Positions 4,635 through 57,844 of a DNA stretch of 64,000 nt are shown in pieces (the stretch's first letter is position 1; the number at the start of each line of letters is the position of its first letter). A program made the translations under genes and the position numbers. This DNA is from Anthoceros angustus (lineage: Eukaryota; Plantae; Anthocerotophyta). The stretch covers positions 558,001 to 622,000 of the forward strand of contig VJWM01000117.1 of NCBI GenBank assembly GCA_010909165.1. Direction: 5' to 3'. Under the pieces are notes generated by a model. That model saw nothing but the letters and a program-made list of their open reading frames with translations. It ran no database searches and was not told the DNA's origin.

Positions 4635-7600
4635 ATGCTCAGACCGATTGTTCCAGTTGGGAATCGCCAAAGGTGGCAGTATGCTACTCAAAGCTCTGGG
4701 GTCATGGCAGCAGACGGCATTAGTGAGACTGCTCCGGGCTTAGAGAGCTTATGCATCGAGGGACGGGTGGAGAAGGCATTGAATATGCTGTGTCACATGG
4801 ACCAGCAGGGTATTGCAGCCCCACTGCACATTTACCGCTCCCTTCTGGAGACTTGTATCAAGAGCAGAGCCACGGCGGAGGCCAAACAAGTGTGTGGTCT
4901 CATGTCTAAGAATGGATGTCCATTGGACAGCAGTTTGGGCGAATCTGTGGTCATCATGCTCGTCCAAAGGGGGAGCCTCTCAAATGCAATCGAAGTATTC
5001 AATGAATTACCACATCGGTCAGCTGCATGTTGGACAGCTATTATCTCAGGATACAGTAAAGCTGGACAAGGACAGAATGCTATCAGACACTACTATCAAA
5101 TGCGAGCAGCAGGCGTGGAGCCAGACAGTCAGACGTTTGTTAGCACACTCCAAGCCTGTGGCAGCTTGGCAGATCTCGACATGGGTAGGAAAGTTCATGC
5201 AGCACTTGTAAGGTATGGGTATGACTCTAACTTGTTTGTGGGCACAGCTCTTATTGGTGCGTATCTAAGATGTGGGGCCTTAGTGGATGCGCAGCATGTT
5301 TTTGAAAGCTTGTCTACCAAGGACACCGTACTGTGGAATTCCATGATCAGGGGATATGCTCAACATGATCTGTGTGAGAAGGCCATGCAACTTTATTCCC
5401 AAATGCAGGATTCTGGAGTGAGGCCAAATGACCGAACATTTGTGAGTGTTCTTAGAGCATGTGGTGGCCTGGCAGCCCTGGAGAACGACACAGTAATTAG
5501 TGGTCAGTCGATGAAAATAGCGGCTCTGGGTTTGGGGAAGGCCATACACAGTCAGATCATAAGCAGTGGCTGTAAATGTGACGAGCTTGTGAGTAGTGCT
5601 CTTATCCATATGTACGCAAGCTGTGGGAGCATCAAGGATGCTCAGCAGGTCTTTGTTACCTCGGCACAAGCCAGTGTGGTGTCATGGAATGCCATGGTTG
5701 CTGGATATGCCCAGCAAGGACATGGTGACAAGGCTCTGAAACTGTTTGCCCAGATGACAAGGGATGGTGTGAGTGCTGATGATCGAACTTTTGTGAGCTT
5801 GCTCCAAGCATGTAGCAGCTTGGCAGGCAAGGAAGAGGATATCCCTTTGGATGGCCAAGAGTTGAAACTGAACGCCCTACAAAGAGCAAAGGCAATCCAT
5901 GCTGAAGCTGTGCGAAGCGGTCATGCGTCTGACATGTTTGTGGGCAGTACTCTGGTGCATGTGTATGGGAAGTGCGGAAGTGTTGTGGATGCAAAGTTCG
6001 TATTCGACAAGCTCTCCAAACGCAACGTGGTTACATGGAATGCGATGATTGCAGGTTACGCAAGCCACAAGCAGGATCACGAGGCTTGGAAACTGTATGT
6101 GCAAATGCAAACCGTTCGGGTGAACCCTGACGAAGCTACATATCTTTGCCTCTTAAAAGCTTGCAGCAATGCTGGAGACCTGGAAATGTGTGCCCAAGTC
6201 CATAAAGACATCACTGACAGAGGACTCCAGTGGAGAGTCAGTGTTGCAAACACACTTATCCACACTTATGGCAAATGTGGCAGCACGGTCCTGGCTCGCT
6301 CCCTGTTCGATTCCATGCCCAACCGGAACGTGGTTACATGGAACGCCATCATCTCTGCATATGCTCAGCAGGAAGAGGGTGACCAGGCTTTGCAGCTCTA
6401 TGCTGAAATGCTTGAGCACAGCGTCAGGCCGAACGATCGCACATTTGTCAGCCTGCTCAAAGCATGCAGCAGCCTGGCAGACTCAGAAACAGCCATCTTC
6501 TCAGGTGGTCAGACATACAAATTATGTTCCGCCCAAAAGGGTAAAGCCATACATGCCGACCTTGTTCGAGCAGGTTACGAATCTGACACCTTTGTTGGTA
6601 ACACATTGGTGGACATGTATGCAAAATGTGGATGCATCGAGGAAGCACAGCACATCTTCGACACCATGTTCCAGCCCGATGTGGTTTCATGGAATGCCCT
6701 AATCGTTGGATACGCTCAGCAAGAACAAGGAACGCATGCTTTCCTACTTTATGACCGTCTGCGGCAAGCAGGTGTGAAACCGGACGAGGCCACGTTCGTG
6801 TGCACCCTGAAAGCGTGCAGCAATTCCGGGGCTCTCAGCATGTGCAGGCGAGTTCATCACGATTTGAGAAACTCCGATTTGCAATGCAGCTTGGGCTTAG
6901 GGTTAGGGAACTGCCTTATTCACGCGTACGGCAAATGTGGGAGCATGGCGGATGCTCGGGCCGTGTTCGACTCGTTGCCCGCGCGAGACTTGGTGTCCTG
7001 GAATGCATTGATCGCCGGGTACGCCCGGCAAGGAGACAGCAAGATGAGCTTAGCGTCGTATGAGGAGATGCAGGAAGCAGGGATGAAGCCGGACGGATTA
7101 ACGTTTCTTTCGATTCTTGCTGCCTGCAGTCATGCTGGTCTGGTGCGTGAGGGCGTTGTGTTCTTCAAGGCCATGAGCGTGGATCACAGCGTCACTTGCT
7201 CCGCACAGCATTACGTGAGCATCATCGACATCCTAGGTCGTGCAGGGAAGTTCGAGCAGGTGGAATCTTTGCTCTCGCAGATGCGTGTGGAGCCTAATCT
7301 GGCGCTATGGCTGTCCTTGCTCGGAGCGTGTCGGAAGCATGGTAACGTCGAGTTGGGAAGACTCGCCTTTGAAGGGGCTGTGAAGCTGGATGCAAGACAA
7401 AGCGCACCCTACATGCTCATGTCCACGATCTACGCGCATGCCCGCATGTTCGATGAAGCAGACGCAATTGAACAACAGAGACAGCACGCAGGTGCGTGGA
7501 AGCAGCCGGGGCAAAGTTGGATAGAGTATCGGGACAAGGTGTATTTGTTCAGAGCAGGAGATGACAGCCACCAGGATCACGACAAACTGTACGCTTTACT

Positions 7601-42496: not shown

Positions 42497-44070
42497 ATGA
42501 ACATCTCCCTCACTGTGATGACCTTGAATCTGCGCAGGGACGGCTTGCCGGACGGCGCCAATGCCTGGCAGCACAGGAAGCATGTGTGCATCGATGTCAT
42601 CAAAAAGTACTCGCCAGTGATTGTGTGCACGCAGGAAGGTAGCCTCGCCTAGCTCGTGTGTTGATGCCGCACCTCTGTTTTGCAAGATTAGTTCTTCTGG
42701 TTGGATTGCTGGCCGAGCTCAAGCTCGAGAATTGGCGTTGGCATAAGACTAGTCCAGACAGTTTCTATCACACTCTTGTATCATCATCCCATCGTATTCC
42801 AGGCCTATGTGAAAAACTTCTTCTTCTTTCTTCCTTAGGTCTCAAGTCGCAGCTGGAGGATTTGGAGCAGGGGTTGCCAGGTTTGTGACGCCTGTTCACG
42901 ATTCTGTCGAATTTGTGTTGTGGATGTCGGGGGATTTGGAGCTCGGATTTGTGTCAAATGTGTGTTGAGCATTTCGGAGGAATCGGAGCTTGGACTTGTG
43001 TCGAATGTGTGTTGTGAATCTCGGCATTACCTCACGATCGTATCCACGGGCCTTGGGGATGGATGTTGGCCAAGCCAGGTTACGAGCAGTTCGGGAATCC
43101 GAGAAACGGGCCTGGCGACCCCGTCGATCAGCACTGCACTATCCTCTACGACGCAGACAAGGTGGAGAAGATGGAGGGAGGAACGTTCTGGCTGTCCGAC
43201 TCCCCGTCCGTTCCGGGGAGTAGGGCTTGGGGTTCCAAGGTCCCGTCCATCGTCACCTGGGTGATATCCTCCGCCGGGATCGCTGTTCGCACTTGGCTGG
43301 TCGTGAAAGCAAAGCTTTTGCTTGTGATGTTGGTTTGCCCTTGACACATGAGCTTGGCACACGTTTCTCATCAAAGGTGTGGAGCTTCCCGGATTCTGCT
43401 TCCAGGTCCTTAACACTCACCTGGACTGCACTAACAGCCGAGCTCGGTTGCGCGGGGCGTGTTTGGCCTGGCAGCATATCGAGACGCTGCCTCCATCTGT
43501 GCCGGTCATCTTCTGCGGGGACTTCTGTGCGGACAAGGCTTCACGGCCCGGCCGTTTCCTACTTGGCTTCTCAAGGTGCGCGTTGGTTACACAGCTTCTT
43601 CCTTCGTTCTGCTTTTCTGCTCTCTCACTTTGTTTTGCGCTGCAGGGAACAAGGGTTAGCTGGGGACATGAGGGATGCCTGGGCTGCCGCTCGCCATCGC
43701 CAGAACGCGCATTTGTCCTACACTTATCATGGATTTAAAGGTACAGAGAGGAGTCCACCCCGAGGAGTCCAGTCCATTGAACTTTTTTGTGTGCTCAGGG
43801 TGGGTGGCTGGCTTGCTGTATGCAGGAACGAGGAGGGGAGTCCTAGATGTGATGAAGGCAGTCTTCAGGGTGGTGTTTTTGTGCTGGGAGCGGGTGAACC
43901 AGGAGTTGCATCACGACTGGATCCTATTTCGGGGTCGGCCTCTGAACCCGGTCCACTGTGAGGTGGTGGACGATCACATCCAGGGACGCTACCCGTCCGA
44001 CCATTTCCCTGTATTTGTGCAGTTTCTCTTGCCCCGGAACGTCAGGCTGCAGGAACCAACACACAGGTGA
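42497..44070 (+). CDS. Endonuclease/exonuclease/phosphatase (DNase I-like) family protein; multi-exon (an in-frame upstream ATG at 42386 is possible)
   Basis: SLTVMTLNL, CTQE|GLKSQL, GTFWLSDSPSVPGS.AWGS, NTHLD, IFCGDF, DMRDAW, HHDWILFRG, YPSDHFPVF. Confidence 0.9.
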
Positions 44071-44130
44071 CAGCAACACCACGGCAGGGCCAATTGTGTA
44101 CAGACTTGTTAGGTGTTGAGGTTATAGCTG

Positions 44131-47100
44131 TTATCCTGTACCACCAGGAGTGAAGTTTGATGGTTCAGCAACTGATTGGATTTCTTGTAGCAACCTTGCA
44201 ATCTCTGCATGTATGTCACGAATTTGGGGATGGGATATGTCCTTCGCCAGGAAGGAATGCGTCTCACAGTCCACTTGAATGCGACTCCACCCGGGGAGCT
44301 TCTTCACTTCCCTGTCCTTCATCAGCCTCCGGACTTCAACCCCGTCATCCCACCTTCCGGCCTCCGAGTAGAACTTGGCAATGAGCACATATGCAGAGGC
44401 ATCTTCTGGGTCGAGCTCCAAGATGCGCTCAGCAGCTCGCTGAGCGAGCTCTGCATCGCCGTGGATTCTACAGGCACCGAGCAGAGATGTCCACACGCAG
44501 GCGCCTGGCGGGGAAGGCAGCCCAGCGATGAAGTCTTCTGCATCATCCAGTCGCCCGGCTCGGCTGAACATGTCCACCATGCAACCGTAGTGCACGTCCT
44601 CCGGTACCACGCCATGTTCTTCCACCACCGATCTGAACACCTCTAGGCCTTCGTCCACCAGGCCCTGGTGGCTGCAGGCTGTCAGGATGTTGATGAATGT
44701 GATGCGATCCAGCTTCACGTTCTCTTGCACCATCTGCTCCAGAAGTCTGAGAGCCTCGGTGCCGCGGCCATGCTGCGCAAATGCCAAGATCATGGCATTC
44801 CATGTTGCAGTGTCTCGGGCATGGAGCTTGCCAAACACCTGGCAAGCATCCTCCAAGCTTCCAGCCTTGGCATACATGTCCACGAGCGCAGTGCCCACAA
44901 ACACATCCCTCTCCAGCTCGCTTTGAATGACGAGGTCGTGCACCTTCCTGCCCTGCTCCAGAGCAGGCATGCTTGCACATGCAGCGAGCAAGGACACAAA
45001 GGTGACTGCATTCGGCTTCACATCCTCCTGCAGCATCTGGGGCAACAGCTGCAAGGCCAGATCAGGCTGCCCACCTTCTGCGTACCCCTTGATCATGGCA
45101 CTGAAGGAAACCACATCACGTTTTGGCAGCATGTCCAGGACCTGGCGTGCATCACCTGTGACTCCACACTTGACGTACATGTCCACCAGAGCTGGTCCTA
45201 CCAGGGGATCCAACTCCAGCCCCCATCTCACCAGATCTGCATGGACTCGGCGGCCATCTTCGAGGGCAGCAGCACTGGCGCATACGTTCAGGACAGACGT
45301 GCAGATGACAGCGTCTGGCACCACCCTTTCCTGATGCATCAGATGGAAAAGCTGCAATGCTGCTTGAGCATTTCCTCCCTGAATGTAGCCATTGATCATG
45401 GCGCACCAGGCAACCACATCATGCTTCGGCAGCATGTCGAATTCCTGCCGGGCAAGATCGGTGCTCCCGCATTTCGCATACATGTGCACCAGGCAGGTGC
45501 CCACATACAGGTCCTTGTCTAGCCCACTCATCCTGATCCGGGTGTGCACCTGCTTGCCAAACTCCAGAGCTCCCAGACTGGCACAAGCATTGAGGAGACA
45601 GACAAATGTCACCTTGTCGGGTTCAACTCCTTCCTGATGCATTTGCTGAAACAGTTCCAGTGCCTCGAGAAACAGCCCTTGCTGAGAAAGACCTTTCATC
45701 ATGGCAGTGTAGAGGACAACACTTCGCTTACAAGTGGCCTCGAACAGCTGACATGCATCCTGTATGCTGCCACACTTGGCGTACATGTCGACTAAACTGT
45801 TCTGTACGAACTCGTCCGATTGGTATCCACATCGGAACACCACCTGGTGTATATCCCTGCCCTTCTCCAGGGCATTGACAGCAGCACAAGCATTCAATGC
45901 ACAAATACAGGTGACTTGGTTTGGCCTGATTCCAGATTTCTGCAACATGTCAAAGAGCTCCAGTGCTTCCTCACCATACCCATGTTGGGCATAGGCAGCT
46001 ATCATGGCATTCCAAGATACCACATTGCGCACATTCATATTGTCAAAGACTTTGCGGGCAGCACATACACTGCTGCACTTGGAGTACATGGTTACCAGAG
46101 CATTTCCCACAAAAGTGTCTGATTCACATCCGTGCCTCTTGATGAGATCGTGAATCTTTTCACCCTTCTCCACATCTGCTGAGCCACAACAGGCACTAAG
46201 CAAACAGACAAAGGTCGTTGCATCTGGGCTGATGCCTTCCTCACACATTTTTGTAAACAGCGTCAAAGCTTCGTCTGCACCTCTGCGGCTCTGGGAGAGA
46301 GCACCAATCATGGTATTCCAAGTGACCAGATTGCGCTTTGACATTTCATCAAAGACCTCACGTGCTGAGTCCAGGCTACCACACTTTGCATACTTGGCCA
46401 ACAAGCAATTCTTCACAGAGATGTTTGTATCGCATCGTGATGAGATAATGCACGAGTGAACTTCCTGCACATCTTGCAGGCGATGCGCACAGCGCAGCAC
46501 CTTGAGAAATGTAAAGGAATTAGGCTGAACGCCTCTGTGCACCATGCTTCTAAAAACTTCAAGAGCCTGTGCTGAAAGGCCCTGTTGCTCAAGCCCTGAT
46601 ATGATAGTATTCGAGGACACCAAACTTGGTTCAGGGATCTTTTGGAACAATTCAAGTGCATTATCCACGCATTCACCTTTGACATACATGGCAAGGAGAG
46701 CACTGCTTACAGTAGGATCCAACTCCAAGCCTCTGTCCGCAAGCAGAGCGTGAACTTGCCTCCCTCTCCCTAGGGCTTCTGGGGAAGCACATGCATTCAC
46801 CATAAGGAGAAACATAGAAGTGACGTCGGCTTTTGTACCGTGCATTTCCTTCAGTCCTTCAACAAGCTGAAGAGCCTTGTCCAAGTACCCATGATCAACA
46901 AATGATTTGATGAGAGGCGTCCATGAGAGCAAGCTTTTCTTTGTCATATCGTCAAACACCTGCTGCGCGTCAACCAGACTTCCACAGCTGGCGTACATCC
47001 TGATCAGAATATTCCCCAACAGGTCCATGTTCGAACCACTCCTGATCACATGTTTGTGCACTTGCTTGCCTTCTGCAAGAGCATTCTGTCTGATGCATTC

Positions 47101-47946
47101 CTGCAAAACACGCACATAGACATCGGTAGGACAGCAGTGGCCCCTTTCAGACATGGAATCCAAAACCAGCACAGCCTCCTTCAACTGCCCTCCTTCACAT
47201 AGCCTGGTAACATTCCTGCCCACCCTGCATATGCAAACTCAGGCTTCACACATCGCTACCAATCTCAACAGAACCACAAGCCCTCAGAAATCATACATTC
47301 CAGCCTTCTTCGTACCTCCAACACTCTGCAGCTGCTCCGGAAGCCAAATGGCTGCTGTCCTTCAAACCTTGGGATGACGTGGTATGTGCCTCAGGCATTG
47401 CATCTATCTTAGCTTGAACCCAACGAGGATTCCACCGGCTGTCAATCCACAGCACCTCGTTTGTTTCCTTGTGTCTGAAATCAGGATACCTGGGGTTATT
47501 CTGAAAGAAGAAGGATCAGCAGACTGCCCAACACTGCAACCGTGGCATTCTCCCAATCCAACATCAAGGCTTGAATACCTTCCGGGGTCTGTTATCCCAC
47601 CATAGGCTCGGATTCGAGAAGAAGCTTTTCCAGAGCTGTTCCCTCACCGCCACCTTATCTGCAACAACAAGCCCACATCCAAATGCGTGACAACTGCATC
47701 TCATTCCTCCACCAAAAGATCAACAAACACTATACACATACCGCCAGCCCCCATGCCCAGCTGCTGCTGCTGTGATGGATGGCAAGAAACAGCTTGATCC
47801 TGTCCCTCTGAGCCCCGATCAGCGAAGTAGAAGCGTGGGCTCATTGTTCTCCACCGGCTCAAGCCCGAGTGAGAGACTGCGGAAGATCGTGCCATCAGCT
47901 TTCCACTCCACCTCACAGAAGGGAAGAGGGAAGGAATCCAATTCAT
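44131..47946 (-). CDS. PLS-class PPR-E+ protein with an N-terminal OSB-type PDF motif; predicted exons 47946-47742, 47658-47579, 47500-47316, 47224-44131
   Basis: The 1030-aa PPR ORF begins at a splice acceptor (ATGCAG|G). Three GT-AG introns of 83, 78 and 91 bp with matching phases (1, 0, 2) join a transit-peptide-like exon and LWKSFFSNPSLWWDNRPRK|NNPRYPDFRHKETNEVLWIDSRWNPRWV in frame. C-terminus KKLPGWSRI...SHP, no DYW. Confidence 0.85.
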
Positions 47947-48467: not shown

Positions 48468-50487
48468 ATGGCGTCCCGTGCAGGCTGCACTCGGTTGCCT
48501 CTCCTCTTGCTGCTGCTGGTTCTGCTCACATTCAGTGCTCGCATCGCTGCTGCTTCTTCGGACTACGGTCGCTCGGAGCGTGAGGAGCGCGAGGAGCGCG
48601 AGGAGCGGCGGGAACGGGAGAAGGAACGGGAACGAGAGCGGGAACGGGAGCGACGAGAACCGGAGCATGAGCATGAACACGAGCACGAGCACGAGCACGA
48701 ACATGAAACAGAACCTGGGAGCAACGAGACATCCTCCAATCCCTTCATTCTGGACAGCCCCAAGGAGTTTGCCAGGACCCAGGCTGGCGTCCTCAGGGTG
48801 CTGCCCAGGCGGGCAGATGAAGAAGTGGCCACGCTGAAGGAGCTGGGTCTGGCGTTTCTGACCCTGGAGCCCAAAGGCTTGCTGCTGCCGCACTACCTGG
48901 ACGCTTCTGTGGTGTTGTACATCCAGAAAGGTGCATTCAGATGATCTCCGCCTTTGACAATCTCTACCTGCCTGTGGTCATCTGTGCCTGCTTATGACCA
49001 TCTCTGCTCTGTGACATCCATGGATGCAAGAGTGTGTCTGTTGTGTTTCTGTGGAGTGAGGTGGATGATGGTGTTTGTGGGAGCTCAGGGAGTGCGAGGG
49101 TTGGCTGGGTGGAGGACTACGAATACGTCCACAAAGACCTTGAGGCAGGAGATGTGTACACCCTAGAGGGAGGCACTGTCCATTACATCCTCAACACCGA
49201 CAAGGGCCTCAGGTTGCAGATCTTCTCTTTGATCGATGCCCGGCACAGCCTGACGCCTGGGCACTTCCAGGTAAAAAATTGCATGCTGCATTCTCCTCCC
49301 TCGCTTTCTGAAGGAAAGCGGTCGCTAGTAGTTGGTACCTGACTGCGTGGAGGAGCTAAGGATTGTGCATTTCTTGGGAATGGTGGTGCAGCCTTTCTTT
49401 GTGGCAGGAGGCTGGGATCCTGTGACCATCCTCTCTGGGTTCGATGCAGACGTGGTGGCAGCGGCATTGAAGGTAAGAGATGCTGCTCTTGTATGAACTG
49501 CATTGATGCCAAAGTTTAGGATCCTCACCCTGGTTGTTGCTGATCTCAGGTATCAAGGAGCGAGGTCGGGGATTTTCTGAATGCACAGAGCGCAGGTCCC
49601 ATAGTTTACACAACAGCCAGGGAAGCCAAGCGGGTAACCTCTGGAAAGAGGCCCAGCTTCTTCTCCCCTCAGCCTAACAGTCTGAAGTCCAGGAGCTGGT
49701 GGGACTGGTTCCAGCAGTCTGTGGGCCAGATTCCGCTGCTGGGTCGGACTCGGTCTGATGATGCCTTCAACCTGCTCAAGAAGAACCCTGACTTCAAGAA
49801 CAAGAACGGCTGGAGCACAACGGTGGATAGGTCTGAGTTTCCTCGTCTGAGGAAGCCCGATGTTGGGCTGTTTGCCGTCAGCTTGAAGGCGGTACGTAGT
49901 TGCTCTCCTCTGGATTTCTGACATGGATTGCAGCATGTAGGAATTGGAAACTGCTGAGGCCTGAGTGAGGAGGTGTATTGCTGCAGGGTTCGATGCTGGC
50001 GCCTCACTGGAATCCCAGGGCGACTGAGATAGCACTGGTGACCAGGGGCTATGGTTATGTGCACATAGCCTATCCCAACGGGACCAAAGCTCTTCACGAG
50101 AGGGTGGACGAAGGCACAGTCTTCGTGGTGCCTAGGTATCATCCGGTCTCGCAGGTGGCTTCCAGGGACGGCACTTTTGAGTTCGTGGGTTTCAGCACTT
50201 CTGCTCGCCGCAACAAGCCACAGTTCCTTGCAGGTGGGGCTCGCTGTCATTGCTGCTTGCAGTTTCAGGTGACGATGCTGCTGGCCTCTGACATCCAGCT
50301 TTTATGTACAGGTCGTAATTCGGTGTTGGCTATGCTGGAGAAGGAAAGCGACCATGATATTCTGCCTGTAGCATTCGATATAGACAGAGCCAGGTTAGAG
50401 GATTTCCTGGGAGCTCAGGACGACGATGTCATTTTGCCTGGATTTGTCGAGGAGGCAACTGTAAATCACAGGGTGTCTACTGAATAG
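48468..50487 (+). CDS. Vicilin-like (7S globulin) bicupin storage protein with (ER)n and (EH)n repeats; multi-exon
   Basis: Signal peptide; cupin 1 LTLEPKGLLLPHYLDA...GDVYTLEGGTVHYILN; ILSGFD..VVAAAL; cupin 2 SMLAPHWNPRATEIALVT.G.G...GTVFVVPRYHP; NKPQFLAG|RNSVL. Confidence 0.9.
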
Positions 50488-51124: not shown

Positions 51125-54100
51125 ATGAAAAAATTTCAGGGAAGGGGGCGGCGGGAGTGGCCTTTATGGTGCAGGTTGGTAGGGTATGGAGAAGGGAGCC
51201 AACAATGTGAGGAGGGACTGCCTAGTGAAGCTGTCGAAGCGTTGAATCTGCTGTCTCGTCAGGGATCGTATATTCCAGCATCTCTCTTCCGAGAGGTCCT
51301 AAAGGGGTGTACCACAAAGAAGGAGTTGGATGTTGGAAGAAAGATCCATAGTCTTGTCGTATCAAGTGGGTATGAGTTAAACAGATTTTTAGCGAACCAC
51401 ACCATCTGCATGTATGCTTCTCATGGTAGGCTGACTGACGCGTTGGAGGTATTCGCCAAACTGGTTTCTCCAGATGCATACATGTGGTCATCCTTGATTT
51501 TAGCCCATGCCGAACACGGAGAACCTATGCAGGCAATAAAACTGTACTGGCAGATGCGTCAGTCAAGAATTACACCAGACGCTCATATATTTGTAGCTGT
51601 CCTTAAAGCATGTGCAAACGCAGCAGATTTGGCATCAGGCAGGGAGGTCCATGTTGATTTTCTGCGGACTGAACTTGATCCAAATGTGTTTGTTGGCAGC
51701 TGCCTGGTTGACATGTATGCAAAATGCGGGAGCCTAGATGATGCACGCAGAGTTTTTGACGACTTGGCCACAAAGAATGTGGTGACGTGGACTGCAATGC
51801 TTGCAGGATATGCTCAGCATGGGCTTGGGGAAGAAGCTCTTGCTCTTTATGCAAGTATGCAACAGGAAGGCATCACACCAGCTGACCAGGTTACGTTTGT
51901 TTGCCTCCTGAAAGCATGTGCTAGCATCAGAGCGTTAGACCTTGGCAAGCAGCTTCATTCCCAAGTTCAGGATAAAGGACTGGACGGTGATGTAGTTGTT
52001 GGTAGCTGCCTGGTGGACATGTATGCAAAATGTGGGAGCATAGCGGATGCCCGCAGGGTGTTTGATAATTTGCCCTCAAGAAATGTGGTGGCATGTACTG
52101 CTATGCTAGCAGGATATGCTCAGCTTGGGCTTGGCAAGGAAGCCCTTTCGCTTTATGCAGTTATGGAGCAGGAAAGGATGTTTCCAGCTGATTACGTTAC
52201 ATTCTTGTGCCTGCTGAAAGCATGTGCCAGCGCTGGTGCTCTACACCAGGGGAAGCAGCTCCATTCTGAGATTCAGGCAAGAGGACTGGAATCCAACGTG
52301 CTTGTCAGTAACTGTCTGGTGGACATGTATGCAAAATGCGGCAGCTTGGACGACGCCCGCAGGGTTTTTGACAATATGCTGACTAAAGATGGGGTGACAT
52401 GGACCTCGATGCTTTGTGGGTATGCTCAGCATGGTCTTGGTCAGGAAGTGCTGTCTCTTTATGCAGTCATGCAAAAAGAGGGCATCAATCCGACCGATCA
52501 TGTTGCATTTGTTTGCCTCCTGAAGGCTTGTGCAAGCGTTGGTGCATTGCATCAGGGTAAGCAGCTTCACTGTCAGATACAGAAAAGGGGGAGCTGACCT
52601 TGTTGTCAACAACTGCCTGGTGGCCATGTATGCAAAGTGTGGGAGTCTAGACGATGCCCGCAAGGTGTTTGATAGTATGAGCACAAGAGATGTGGTGACA
52701 TGGTCAGCCATGGTCACTGGATATTCTCAGTATGGGCTGGGGCAAGAGGCCCTGCAATGTTATGAGGCCATGCGACTGGCAGGAATTCATCCAGATGCGG
52801 TTACATTTGTGTCCCTTCTCACAGCTTGCAGTCATGCTGGCCTGGTCGAGAAAGGTCTGGAGTACTTCGAATCCATGAGCAAAGACTTTGGCGTGACTCC
52901 GGAAATTGAGCATTATGTGAGCATGGTAGACCTTTTCGGCCGCGCAGGAAACTTTTCAAAGGTAGAGCAGCTCTTGTCAGTGATGCCAATGCAGCCTGAC
53001 CTGGCCACATGGCTTTGCGTCCTAGGTGCCTGTCGGAAGCAGCTCCATTCTCAGATTCAGGCAAGAGGACTGGAATCCAACGTGTCAGTAACTGTCTGGT
53101 GGCATGTATGCAAAATGCGGCAGCTTGGACGACGCCCGCAGGGTTTTGACAATATGCTGACTAAGATGGGGTGACATGGACCTCGATGCTTTGTGGGTAT
53201 GCTCAGCATGGTCTTGGTCAGGAAGTGCTGTCTCTTTATGCAGTCATGCAAAAAGAGGGCATCAATCCGACCGATCATGTTGCATTTGTTTGCCTCCTGA
53301 AGGCTTGTGCAAGCGTTGGTGCATTGCATCAGGGTAAGCAGCTTCACTGTCAGATACAGAAAAGGGGGCTTGGAGCTGACCTTGTTGTCAACAACTGCCT
53401 GGTGGCCATGTATGCAAAGTGTGGGAGTCTAGACGATGCCCGCAAGGTGTTTGATAGTATGAGCACAAGAGATGTGGTGACATGGTCAGCCATGGTCACT
53501 GGATATTCTCAGTATGGGCTGGGGCAAGAGGCCCTGCAATGTTATGAGGCCATGCGACTGGCAGGAATTCATCCAGATGCGTTTGTGTCCCTTCTCACAG
53601 CTTGCAGTCATGCTGGCCTGGTCGAGAAAGGTCTGGAGTACTTCGAATCCATGAGCAAAGACTTTGGCGTGACTCCGGAAATTGAGCATTATGTGAGCAT
53701 GGTAGACCTTTTCGGCCGCGCAGGAAACTTTTCAAAGGTAGAGCAGCTCTTGTCAGTGATGCCAATGCAGCCTGACCTGGCCACATGGCTTTGCGTCCTA
53801 GGTGCCTGTCGGAAGCATGGCAACATAGCCCTGGCAGAACGTGTTTTTGATTGTGCCTTACGTCTGCAGCCCAAGGATGCTGCAGCATATGTTTTGATGT
53901 CACACATCTATGCCGATGCTGGCCTCTTTGACCGAGCAAGGGCACTATTCAAGTGCAGAAGGAGGGAAGGTGTCTGCAAGGAACCTGGCTGGAGCTGGAT
54001 TGAGGTCGAGCAGGAAGCGCACACATTCTTCGTAGGAGACCGTAAGCACCCTGAACATGAGGAAGTACATGGCATTTTAGATAAGGTAACCTTATTGCTG

Positions 54101-54145
54101 AGGCAAACTGGGAATACATCATGGTCTCATAATATGCCCGCTTAG
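51125..54145 (+). CDS. PLS-class PPR-E+ gene (no DYW), broken in this assembly by an internal ~785-bp duplication and small deletions
   Basis: ORF pieces 51125-52597, 52530-53174 and 53171-54145 hold PLS triplets. The gene ends KEPGWSWIE...VGDRKHPE. Confidence 0.8.
52255..53817 (+). repeat. Tandem duplication of ~785 bp inside the PPR gene (52255-53039 / 53040-53817)
   Basis: The copies are nearly identical and differ mainly by small deletions. The junction has GGAAGCA microhomology (GGGAAGCAGCTCC vs CGGAAGCATGG). Confidence 0.85.
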
Positions 54146-54921: not shown

Positions 54922-57844
54922 ATGGCCGTAGTATGGCAATCGGACCCGTTGAGGACCCAACAAATTGGTGTGTGTACAGGAACTCTACTAGGAGCTCCCG
55001 CGCACCTCACTTTACGGAGTCAACCTCTGGCAAACGATGTCTCCAGGAGCAGCAGTGTAAGGAGCCCAGCACTTCCGCTTCTGACAGAAATTGTGGGTAG
55101 GGACGGGTTTTCCAGCAATGATCGTCGCCAGGAGCAGGAGCACTTGTGGCAACAATTTTTTCTGGAGCCTACCATGTGGTGGGACAACAGACGAGATAAG
55201 ATGAGCCCCCGCTCCCCTGACTTCCGGCGTAAGGGGTCCGGCGAGGTCCTGTGGTTAAACAGCATGTTTAAGCCAGCTTGGGTTGATGAACAGCTGGTGT
55301 CCTTGGATGTACAGATGGGTCATGGTGCCTCTCCTTCCGGTCAGCTCTCCGGATAAGCCTGAACCTGGCAGGTGCAGCAGTGTAAGGGCCCAGCACTTCC
55401 ACTTCGAGAAATTGTGGTGGGGACGGGTTTTCCAGCGATGGTCGTCGCCAGGAGCAGGAGCACTTGTGGCAACAATTTTTCTGGACCCTACCATGTGGTG
55501 GGACAACAGACGAGATAAGAAGAGCTCCCGTTCGCCTGACTTCCGGCGTAAGGGGTCCGGCGAGGTCCTGTGGTTAAACAGCATGTTTAAGCCAGCTTGG
55601 GTTGATGAACAGCTGGTGTCCTTGGATGTACAGATGGGTTTTTGGTCCTCTCCTTCCGGGTCGAGCTCTCCGGATAACCATGAACCTGGGGGACGGGCAG
55701 GATCGGGAATGGGCGTCATAACTGCTGGAACCGTGAGCATGTTATGTCAGCAGGGGAAGCTTTCGGAGGCCGTTGGAGTCTTAGAATCTCTGGCGCAGAC
55801 AGACTCTGCCATTTCTCAGTCTCTGTTTTACACTGTGCTGAAGCTGTGTACAGCTAAGAAGGATTTGGTCGCGGGGCGACGAGTTCATGATCTCACTGTC
55901 AAACTTGGGTACAATTCGAATGCATACTTGGGGAACCATATCTTGCGCATGTATGCATCTGGAGGTAGGCTGCAGGAGGCCACGGATGTGCTCACCAGGG
56001 TAGGCAAACCAAATGCCTTCATGTGGTTTTCCTTAATTTCTGCACATGCTAAGAATGGGAAACCTACTGAGGCCATACAACTGTACCATGAAATGCGCAG
56101 GTCAGGAGTGAAGGCAGATGCTCACGTCTTTGTAGCTGCCCTTCAAGCTTGTGCTTTGGCCGCCGACTTGGAATCTGGCAGAAAAGTGCACTGTGATGTA
56201 TTGCACAGTGGTATTCCTCTTAACCTGTTTGTTGGCTCCTCCCTGGTGGACATGTATGCAAAATGTGGTGAATTGGAAGATGCACGCCAGGTATTTGACA
56301 GCATGGAGACAAAGAATGTGGTGATATGGAATGCCGTGATAGCTGGGTATGCCCAGCAAGGGCTCGGACATGAGGCGCTTGTTCTATATGGCCAAATGGA
56401 GCAGGAGGGCCTCATTTTGCCTGACCGTGTTACCTTTGCTTGCCTTCTGAAAGCCTGTGCAAGCACTGGTGCCTTACAAAAGGGCAGGCAGCTGCACTCA
56501 CAGATTGTCGAAAGAGGATTGCTACATGATATCCTGGTGGGCACCTGTCTGGTGGACATGTATGGAAAATGCGGTGAAATGAATGATGCACGCAAGGTTT
56601 TTGAAAGCTTGGCCACAAAAGATGTGGTGACATGGAATGCCCTGATAGCTGGACATGTACAGCAAGGACTCGGCCAGGAAGCGCTCGTTCTGTATGGGGA
56701 AATGGAGCAAGAGGGCGGGCTTGTGGCTAACGATGTTACTTTAACTTCCCTTCTAAAGGCCTGTGGGAGCACTGGTGCCTTACAGAAGGGCAGGCAGCTG
56801 CACTCACGGATTGTCGAAAGAGGACTGCTGAACAATGTAGTGTTGGGCAACTGCCTGGTGGACATGTATGCAAAATGTGGTAAACTGGAAGCTGCACGCC
56901 AGGTTTTTGACAGCTTGGCCTCAAAGGATGTGGTGACATGGACCGCCCTGATATCTGGGTATGGTGCGTGTGATGAAGGTCACAAGGCACTAGCTTGTTT
57001 TGAGGAGATGTTAGTTGCCGGTGTTCAGCCTAATGATGCAACTTTTACTTGCCTTTTTGTAGCATGCAGTCATGAGGGACTGGTCCAAGAGGGTCGCAAA
57101 CACTTTGATTCCATGGCTAAACAGCATGGCATCAGACCTACTACTGAGCATTACAATTGCATGATTGATCTTCTTGGGCGTGCAGGGCATTTAGATGAAG
57201 CTGAGAAGATGCTATTGACCTGCGAGGGCCAAAGTAATGTTGTGGGCTTGAGGTCGTTGTTGAATTCCTGCAAAAGTCACGGGGATCTAGGGAGGGCGAT
57301 GTGGTGTTTCGAAAGGATTGTCAAGCTGGACCCCCAGGAGGCGCCCGCATATGTACTCATGGCCAATGCCTATGCAGATGCAGGTAGATGGACCGATGTA
57401 GCCAGGATTGAAACACAGAGAAGGGCAGCAGGAGCTAACAAGAAACCTGCAGTGGCGACCATTGAGGTGAAGGAGCAGGTACATACATTTCTGGTGGGAG
57501 AAAGAAGAGAGGATATTGCGCTTAAGATAGAGAGCACGAATGCGCGTATGAAGGAGGAAGGAGGACATATACCTCACACAAAGTTGGTGTTGAAGCCATT
57601 GCGGGAGAAGGAAAAGGAAGATGTGCTTTGTGGGCATGCTGAGAAGCTAGCTCTGGCGTTTGGTCTCTTGCACACTCCGAGTGGGACACCTCTGGTGGTA
57701 ACGAAGAATCTACGCATGTGTAGTGACTGCCACAGTTCCACGGAGATCATGTCAAGGATTGAACAGAGAGACATTGTTGTAAGGGATGGGTACCGTGTGC
57801 ATAGATTCGCAAACGGTTGTTGCAGTTGTAAGGGTCGACCCTGA
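54922..57844 (+). CDS. Copy A: PDF-PDF-PPR(PLS)-E-DYW:KP (GRP-type) candidate U-to-C RNA editing factor
   Basis: ORF 54922-55356 (PDF1) and ORF 55283-57844 (PDF2 plus PPRs in frame). KKPAVATIEV replaces the PG box; GHAEKLA, KNLRMCSDCH, terminal CSCKGRP. A small indel separates the two ORFs. Confidence 0.85.

Follow-up and report, generated by a model that had tools for sequence, protein, structure and literature searches.

A spliced gene of the hornwort Anthoceros angustus predicted to place a PDF motif ahead of an E+-type PPR array

PPR editing factors count among the RNA-binding proteins of plants that have been studied most, and what lies ahead of their repeats is usually seen as a transit peptide only. 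The locus described here raises the question of what precedes the repeats of one such protein, how it is spliced to them and where it came from. The locus lies on the minus strand of the window, a 64,000-nt stretch of Anthoceros angustus DNA in which all coordinates below are given. A first-pass annotation had proposed that a 1030-codon PPR open reading frame (ORF; 47223-44131, minus strand) receives hidden 5′ exons encoding a PDF motif, either gained locally from an OSB gene or ancestral.

Gene structure and domain composition

The PPR ORF opens, as proposed, at an AG acceptor and not at an ATG. An in-frame stop codon is located at 47241-47239, the ORF start directly follows the AG at 47226-47225, which is the first AG past that stop, and the first in-frame ATG is codon 24, at 47154. 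Joining the four exons listed below yields a 3564-nt frame of 1187 codons with zero internal stops, and all three proposed introns are GT-AG. The features of the locus are given here with their coverage in the sequencing runs X1, X2 and X12, which are described in the next section.

47742..47946, minus strand: exon 1, 68 codons plus 1 nt, with an ATG at 47946, a second Met at 47895 and a presequence-like N-terminus
47659..47741, minus strand: intron 1, 83 nt, GTATGT..GCAG, phase 1; skipped in X2 and X12
47579..47658, minus strand: exon 2, 80 nt, encoding the first half of the PDF motif (..EQLWKSFFSNPSLWWDNRPRK); X1, X2 and X12 each have spliced contigs that contain it
47501..47578, minus strand: intron 2, 78 nt, GTATTC..TTCAG, phase 0, within the PDF motif; skipped exactly in X1
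47316..47500, minus strand: exon 3, 185 nt, second half of the PDF motif (NNPRYPDFRHK..LWIDSRWNPRWV) and a linker; ends in phase 2 within an AG/G Arg codon
47414..47656, minus strand: PDF motif of about 55 aa, interrupted by intron 2
47225..47315, minus strand: intron 3 in the modelled in-frame form, 91 nt, GTACGA..ATGCAG, phase 2; donor use seen, acceptor predicted
47101..47315, minus strand: intron 3 in the observed alternative form, 215 nt; acceptor TTTTGCAG at 47102-47101, in the first PPR motif (codons VLQ/EC)
44131..47224, minus strand: exon 4, encoding a PLS-type PPR array followed by E and E+ motifs and a stop codon (44133-44131), without a DYW domain
44275..44463, minus strand: E motif, ORF residues 921-983; PF20431, 65.6 bits
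44179..44262, minus strand: E+ motif, ORF residues 988-1015; PF20430, 24.5 bits (cut-off 24)

A TAA stands in frame two codons upstream of the exon 1 ATG. The 68 aa of exon 1 include 7 R/K and 13 S/T residues, the first acidic residue appearing at position 43; judged by this composition, exon 1 looks like an organellar presequence. The PPR array is matched by Pfam over many stretches (PPR_2, 2.8e-120; PPR, 1.6e-100). It is followed by a clear E motif and by an E+ motif whose match is marginal, at half a bit above the cut-off. No PF14432 (DYW) match was found in the PPR ORF, and tblastn detected no remnant of this domain downstream of the stop codon, so the proposal that the protein ends at E+ without a deaminase domain is borne out. 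No exon piece, nor the PPR ORF, matches an SSB domain in Pfam; the gene is thus not an OSB.

The PDF motif has the signature W..FF..P..WWDNR..K..P..PDFKHK....LW.....P.WV, about 50 aa long. The separate exon peptides match no Pfam family, since Pfam has no PDF model, and two dedicated profiles were used. Profile A2 is a 59-column alignment of N-terminal segments of PPR homologues, an intronless copy from the same window (55126-55302) and the exon pieces; the OSB-only profile was built from 81 OSB-borne motifs. The joined motif of exons 2 and 3 scores 98.4 bits with A2, which represents PPR-borne PDFs, and 78.3 bits with the OSB-only profile. With the latter, two copies from the GRP-type (DYW:KP) PDF-PPR cluster of the window (54.9-64 kb) score 80.1 and 68.7 bits, and the suggestion that the motif described here is nearer to the OSB consensus than the GRP copies was not upheld.

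A search with A2 among 1.84 billion representative proteins retrieved 1287 proteins at E <= 0.001. Ten of these matches were scanned in Pfam. The SSB cut-off was passed by P0156, P0157, P0168, P0180, P0243 and P0264 (285-375 aa), P0243 being named ‘OSB1, mitochondrial-like’ (Drosera capensis), and likewise by P0133 (500 aa); the long, multi-repeat P0121 gave a sub-threshold SSB match, P0159 matched no family and P0135 is a PPR protein. Proteins P0121-P0125 (719-1160 aa) carry 9-13 tandem PDF repeats and are apparently PDF-repeat proteins; BLAST sorting gave neither PPR nor SSB similarity for P0122-P0125. Two long angiosperm models with PDF motifs, P0155 (Striga, ICR2-like) and P0165 (Coptis, kinesin), probably result from a neighbouring OSB gene having been merged into the gene model.

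OSB proteins such as AtOSB1-4 (Zaegel et al. 2006, as cited in PMC6963530 and PMC4166229) are reported to prefer ssDNA, and the PDF motif of AtOSB1 is described as sufficient for ssDNA binding (PMC6963530). The gene described here has the same motif, which is about 50-59 aa in length, and the profile of PPR-borne motifs retrieves OSBs with SSB domains. Unlike OSBs, it has no SSB-like OB fold recognised by Pfam; its PDF motif is single, N-terminal and followed by PPR repeats, whereas the motif of OSBs is C-terminal to the OB fold. Its ligand is likely to be RNA, as opposed to the ssDNA reported for OSBs. For a related PPR-borne PDF (P0070 residues 63-121, alignment A2), AF2 predicts a small unit of helix–strand–strand–helix order with a pLDDT of 77. 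A sequence search of the PDB with the PDF profile gave 0 matches, and a Foldseek search of the PDB with the AF2 model returned nothing below E = 3.9.

Splicing in RNA-like contigs

The RNA evidence consists of assembled contigs with a depth of about 5-17 and not of raw reads, so that rare or equal isoforms can drop out; where paths branch, neighbouring contigs share exactly 30 nt. The RNA status of the runs is a guess, but a contig that exactly skips a GT-AG interval is a transcript. Run X1 has zero differences from the window and was taken as the same organism. Runs X2 and X22 represent organism B and X12 represents organism C, about 4-5% different from the window.

Three introns had been predicted upstream of or at the start of the PPR ORF. 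Removal of the first two and use of the donor of the third are seen in the contigs; the predicted acceptor at 47225 is not, the contigs using 47101 instead. Intron 1 is skipped in X2 and X12, where 47656/8 is connected to 47742 and exon 1 is joined to exon 2; the X12 contig extends upstream to 48003, and the two intervening letters at the X2 joint fit a synonymous GAT to GAC change. Intron 2 is skipped exactly in X1, whose record 6 passes from 47315-47500 directly to 47579-47659; the final 12 letters of the X1 contig are unplaced, as expected of a short overhang into exon 1. In X2, unlike X1, the intron 2 acceptor is placed 11 nt further downstream, at 47491-47490 (ccccag/gtatcc; region 47486-47500, minus strand), and, when read in the window sequence, runs straight into a TGA. 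One X2 contig has introns 2 and 3 both spliced to downstream, frame-breaking acceptors. Intron 3 is retained in some X2 and X12 contigs, and intron 2 in one X12 contig.

The donor of intron 3 at 47315 is joined to 47099/47100 in both X1 and X2, with 215 nt skipped (CT..AC on the plus strand). The acceptor used is the AG at 47102-47101 (TGTTTTGCAG followed by G), within the VLQ/EC codons of the first PPR motif. Compared with the in-frame intron, this removes a further 124 nt (215 - 91) and shifts the frame; the ORF stops 17 codons past the joint, with a total of 174 aa that comprise the presequence and the PDF motif only. The joint 47316/47224 is absent from the contigs of all four runs, and the sole X1 contig leaving exon 3 goes to 47100 and continues unbranched.

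A stand-alone 174-aa protein of presequence and PDF motif could be proposed as the main product, made with the 47101 acceptor; the PPR ORF would then be translated from other transcripts, beginning within intron 3 or retaining it, or would be heading for decay. We regard this as unlikely. Although 47316/47100 is the only joint of exons 3 and 4 seen, occurs in two species and is GT-AG, the PPR ORF is intact over 1030 codons, with divergence skewed to third positions. Contigs retaining intron 3 do exist in X2 and X12. The PPR ORF, for its part, lacks a usable start, the first in-frame ATG being within the first PPR motif and preceded by out-of-frame ATGs. The acceptor TGTTTTGCAG is nearer to the consensus than CATATGCAG; it falls, however, in the codons of the conserved VLQEC, so that coding explains its conservation. 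PDF proteins lacking both PPR and SSB domains are found among the profile matches. On the other hand, the 174-aa ORF would be followed by about 3 kb of 3′ UTR, a related locus, L001, preserves the in-frame phase and acceptor, and moss and liverwort genes of the same design are annotated in frame (see below).

For the four-exon gene with an in-frame junction, several features of the contigs are relevant. Record 5 of X1 (47073-47217, depth 5.1) covers the PPR exon upstream of the alternative acceptor; the depth of the alternative-joint contig is 5.9. This record ends 7 nt short of the predicted acceptor, and 47218-47314 is uncovered in X1. A second transcript form, the 5′ junction of which is unassembled, therefore exists in X1. 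All three RNA runs break at 47102, the point where the genomic and 47316/47100 paths diverge. A contig of X12 ends exactly at 47226, where the genomic and 47316/47224 paths would diverge, both ending in AG; this break is an indirect sign, not proof, that the acceptor at 47225 is used in organism C.

The alternative-joint contigs tie exon 3 to PPR sequence at 47073-47099 and overlap the PPR-body contig in two species. With exon 3 and the PPR exon physically linked in this way and the motif scoring 78-98 bits, it is hardly credible that the PDF-like exons are a chance or annotation artefact belonging to no PPR-containing transcript; the missing in-frame joint is all that speaks for it. The alternative acceptor itself could be splicing noise at a consensus-like site that arises from coding sequence, or could be a route to a free PDF protein. 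Diphasiastrum PDF-PPR loci have many annotated isoforms. In the protein collection, the full PPR query gave no match above 55% identity and none from this species; a 200-aa N-terminal query gave one distant match only, again none from this species.

The X2 contigs also break at 47195/47196 (region 47166-47196), where depth falls from 16.7 to 6.0. Another in-frame acceptor was considered for this break, but the window sequence offers no suitable AG; a sequence variant in organism B, or use of another splice site there, may be responsible.

The PPR gene has close neighbours on both sides. A head-to-head gene at 48468-48944 (plus strand), continuing at 49034-49342, begins much like a signal peptide, contains an acidic repeat of Glu, Arg and His and weakly matches Cupin_1 (E = 0.0068, below the cut-off). 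A single 2638-nt X2 contig covers PPR exon 1 and continues without interruption into this neighbour, so the 5′ ends of the two genes probably overlap. On the other side, a plus-strand ORF without a Pfam match (43675-44070) and the PPR gene meet tail-to-tail. A 5164-nt X1 contig with a depth of 34.9, against 6.75, covers 43900-44555, which indicates that the transcript of this neighbour overlaps the last about 400 nt of the PPR coding region. Elsewhere in the window, the PLS-PPR genes at 4734-7595 and 51134-54133 (both plus strand), 34-40% identical to the gene described here, have no adjoining PDF motif according to a pattern scan.

Conservation of the structure and origin of the PDF-PPR architecture

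The best PPR homologue by identity, P0009 (55% over 969 aa), is collinear with exon 4 and is encoded on L001 (1998-5186), a 21-kb DNA contig of another species that can be treated as ortholog-like. P0009 retains a complete DYW domain, ending ..CSCRDYW, whereas the window gene stops about 15 codons past E+. From this comparison of sequences, the window copy looks like a recent DYW-less derivative whose deaminase domain was lost in its own lineage.

Upstream of the called gene, L001 has an exon ending ..WWDNRPCK/GTAACT; the next exon opens with NNPRYPDF.. and ends AG/GTACGG in phase 2. The L001 acceptor, TTACGCAG followed by G, leads in frame into ..NVNLLCQGGRLKEALLVL.., the window counterpart of which is ..NVTRLCEGGQLKEAVLVL... 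The equivalent of exon 3 is 131 nt long, 54 nt (18 codons) shorter than that of the window and in the same phase. In intron 3, the last about 30 nt are conserved between the window and L001 and the rest is not. Several ATG/GT combinations fit exon 1 of L001, none like the window presequence.

In the coding stretch between the two acceptors, window and L001 differ with pN 0.33 and pS 0.64 (27 codons) and, after these, with pN 0.09 and pS 0.52 (10 codons). The residues ahead of the codon-24 ATG are PPR-like and conserved with L001. These residues can be translated only through a junction of this kind. In our reading of the comparisons given here, the in-frame PDF-PPR fusion is the conserved design, and we infer from them that the junction 47316/47224 exists. 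The PDF motif compared with that of L001 has a pN of 0.115 and a pS of 0.79, values indicative of purifying selection. The last 200 codons of the PPR ORF have 28 listed differences from organisms B and C, distributed 9/2/17 over codon positions 1/2/3, and 17 of them are synonymous. Exons 2 and 3 are 2.4-2.9% different from organism B and the PPR body about 4%.

The same structure is found in other bryophytes. Three introns interrupt the annotated gene of the moss Ceratodon purpureus (P0105, KC19_1G285400): a phase-1 intron follows codon 45, a phase-0 intron follows WWDNRNRK and a phase-2 intron (AG/G) follows codon 130. The gene of the liverwort Calypogeia fissa (P0070) has the first two of these. 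Relative to the first W of WWD, introns 1 and 2 are located at -19 (phase 1) and +8 (phase 0) in Ceratodon, Calypogeia and the window alike. The phase-2 intron 3 (AG/G) is common to the window, the Ceratodon gene and L001, the last having introns 2 and 3.

That PDF-PPR is a recurring architecture is confirmed by the occurrence of the PDF motif in about 34 of the 120 best PPR homologues, from Diphasiastrum, Sphagnum, Ceratodon and Calypogeia. In public annotations, the architecture is present only as ‘hypothetical protein’ gene models. These unnamed genes (Ceratodon P0105, Calypogeia fissa P0070, Sphagnum P0057/P0062 and many Diphasiastrum loci) have the same order of presequence, PDF, PPR and E as the window gene, and intron positions and phases as in it. 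Most of the seedless-plant genes end in DYW, whereas the window gene ends at E+, and lycophyte copies carry 1-3 PDF repeats. Part of the architecture is missed by gene callers that rely on ORFs only, as had been predicted: several database PPR proteins begin ..NARYPDF, just past the intron. Proteins P0022, P0034, P0077 and P0085, called from contigs, start with V-N-A-x-Y-P-D-F, at the codon immediately downstream of the intron within the motif; ORF-style calling has thus cut off the first half of their PDF motif.

OSB genes were mapped on genomic loci of Drosera capensis (P0243), Populus tomentosa (P0260) and the liverwort Riccia fluitans (P0240). In each of the three, a phase-0 intron follows WWDNRxxK at +8, and a phase-1 intron is placed somewhat upstream of it, at -25 or -28. 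The phase-0 intron said to split the motif after WWDNRPRK is therefore present at the same site in OSB genes, a comparison suggested together with that proposal. An intron within the motif that is common to OSB genes implies that the split was inherited from OSB-type genes and that the module was transferred in the form of genomic exons and not by retroposition.

A tree was built from 179 PDF domains, 45 of them PPR-borne, on only 59 columns. The window PDF is sister to that of L001 (SH-aLRT 98), and the PDFs next to this pair are PPR-borne without exception. On this tree, the PPR/OSB label changes 5 times, against about 40 times when shuffled. Forcing all 45 PPR-borne PDFs into one clade gave a likelihood better than that of the free quick search (p-AU 0.95). 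One clade is thus not rejected and is the best tree found, although 59 columns do not prove a single origin; with this result there is no need for a separate gain here.

These data bear on the possibility that PDF exons were recently shuffled from an OSB gene into this PPR gene, independently, in the hornwort lineage. Such a gain would account for the intra-motif intron being the same as in OSB genes and for its absence from the GRP-cluster copies of the same window. It is difficult to reconcile with the position of intron 1, which is at -19 in phase 1 in moss and liverwort PDF-PPR genes but at -25 or -28 in OSB genes, and with the phase-2 AG/G intron 3 common to the moss gene and L001; moreover, the nearest PDFs in the tree are all PPR-borne, the one-clade likelihood is better, and many of the closest PPR homologues by repeat region carry a PDF motif too. 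We therefore consider a recent independent gain very improbable. Of the two origins put forward for the motif, the ancestral one is favoured by the shared introns and the one-clade tree, and local exon shuffling is not. The exon layout of PDF-PPR genes probably predates the hornwort/moss/liverwort split, the PDF exons having once been copied, as it appears, from an OSB-type gene as genomic DNA.

The GRP-cluster genes have, as here, an N-terminal PDF motif ahead of PLS repeats. Their PDF copies are intronless and their repeat regions are 30-40% identical to that of the window gene, which has three introns, an open frame and spliced RNA-like contigs. The hidden exons do carry a genuine OSB-type PDF motif ahead of a second PPR gene, as claimed. 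The intronless copies are best read as derivatives that have lost the introns.

Predicted product and significance

Taken with a probability of about 0.78, the locus is one nuclear four-exon gene (47946 to 44131, minus strand) of an old PDF-PPR lineage, encoding an organelle-targeted protein that comprises a presequence, a PDF motif, a PLS-type PPR array, E and E+, without DYW. Organelle targeting and all biochemical roles given below are predictions for this protein. In PLS PPR proteins, the array binds a specific stretch of RNA immediately 5′ of an editing site. The array of the window gene would read a specific organellar RNA sequence, and the E/E+ end would recruit a deaminase supplied in trans. 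The PDF domain may bind single-stranded RNA non-specifically upstream of the PPR footprint, or dock a partner. The pre-mRNA is also spliced at the stronger-looking acceptor 124 nt inside the PPR exon, and this form can encode only the 174-aa protein of presequence and PDF motif.

E+ PPR proteins without a deaminase rely on a DYW protein in trans, e.g. with DYW2 or MEF8 as partners (PMC7076377, PMC9522420). The window gene resembles PLS-class E+ proteins, which act as site-recognition factors in C-to-U editing, in its PLS PPR array, its E and E+ motifs and the lack of DYW; it is unlike other E+ factors in its N-terminal PDF domain and three 5′ introns. As a speculative extension, which we hold to be rather doubtful, the PDF motif might be an ancestral accessory module of seedless-plant PPR editing factors (an ssRNA binder or a partner-docking module) that was lost in seed plants, and the choice of 3′ splice site might be a regulated switch that releases a free, organelle-targeted PDF protein.

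In the literature searched for the phrase ‘PDF motif’, no link to PPR proteins and no paper describing PDF-PPR was found. New here are a spliced PDF-PPR copy with an open reading frame covered by RNA-like contigs, an exon structure shared across bryophyte lineages, an intra-motif intron common with OSB genes, and the alternative splice. The open frame and the spliced RNA-like contig coverage make this copy useful in practice, and ORF-based catalogues of PPR proteins truncate the PDF domain.

In this gene, a selected module of a nucleic-acid-binding type, from the organellar DNA-recombination machinery, precedes the PPR repeats. Module and introns inherited from before the bryophyte split would represent a dated, DNA-level transfer of a domain from the DNA-maintenance to the RNA-editing toolkit, and they offer testable ideas on how editing factors of seedless plants may gain affinity or partners.
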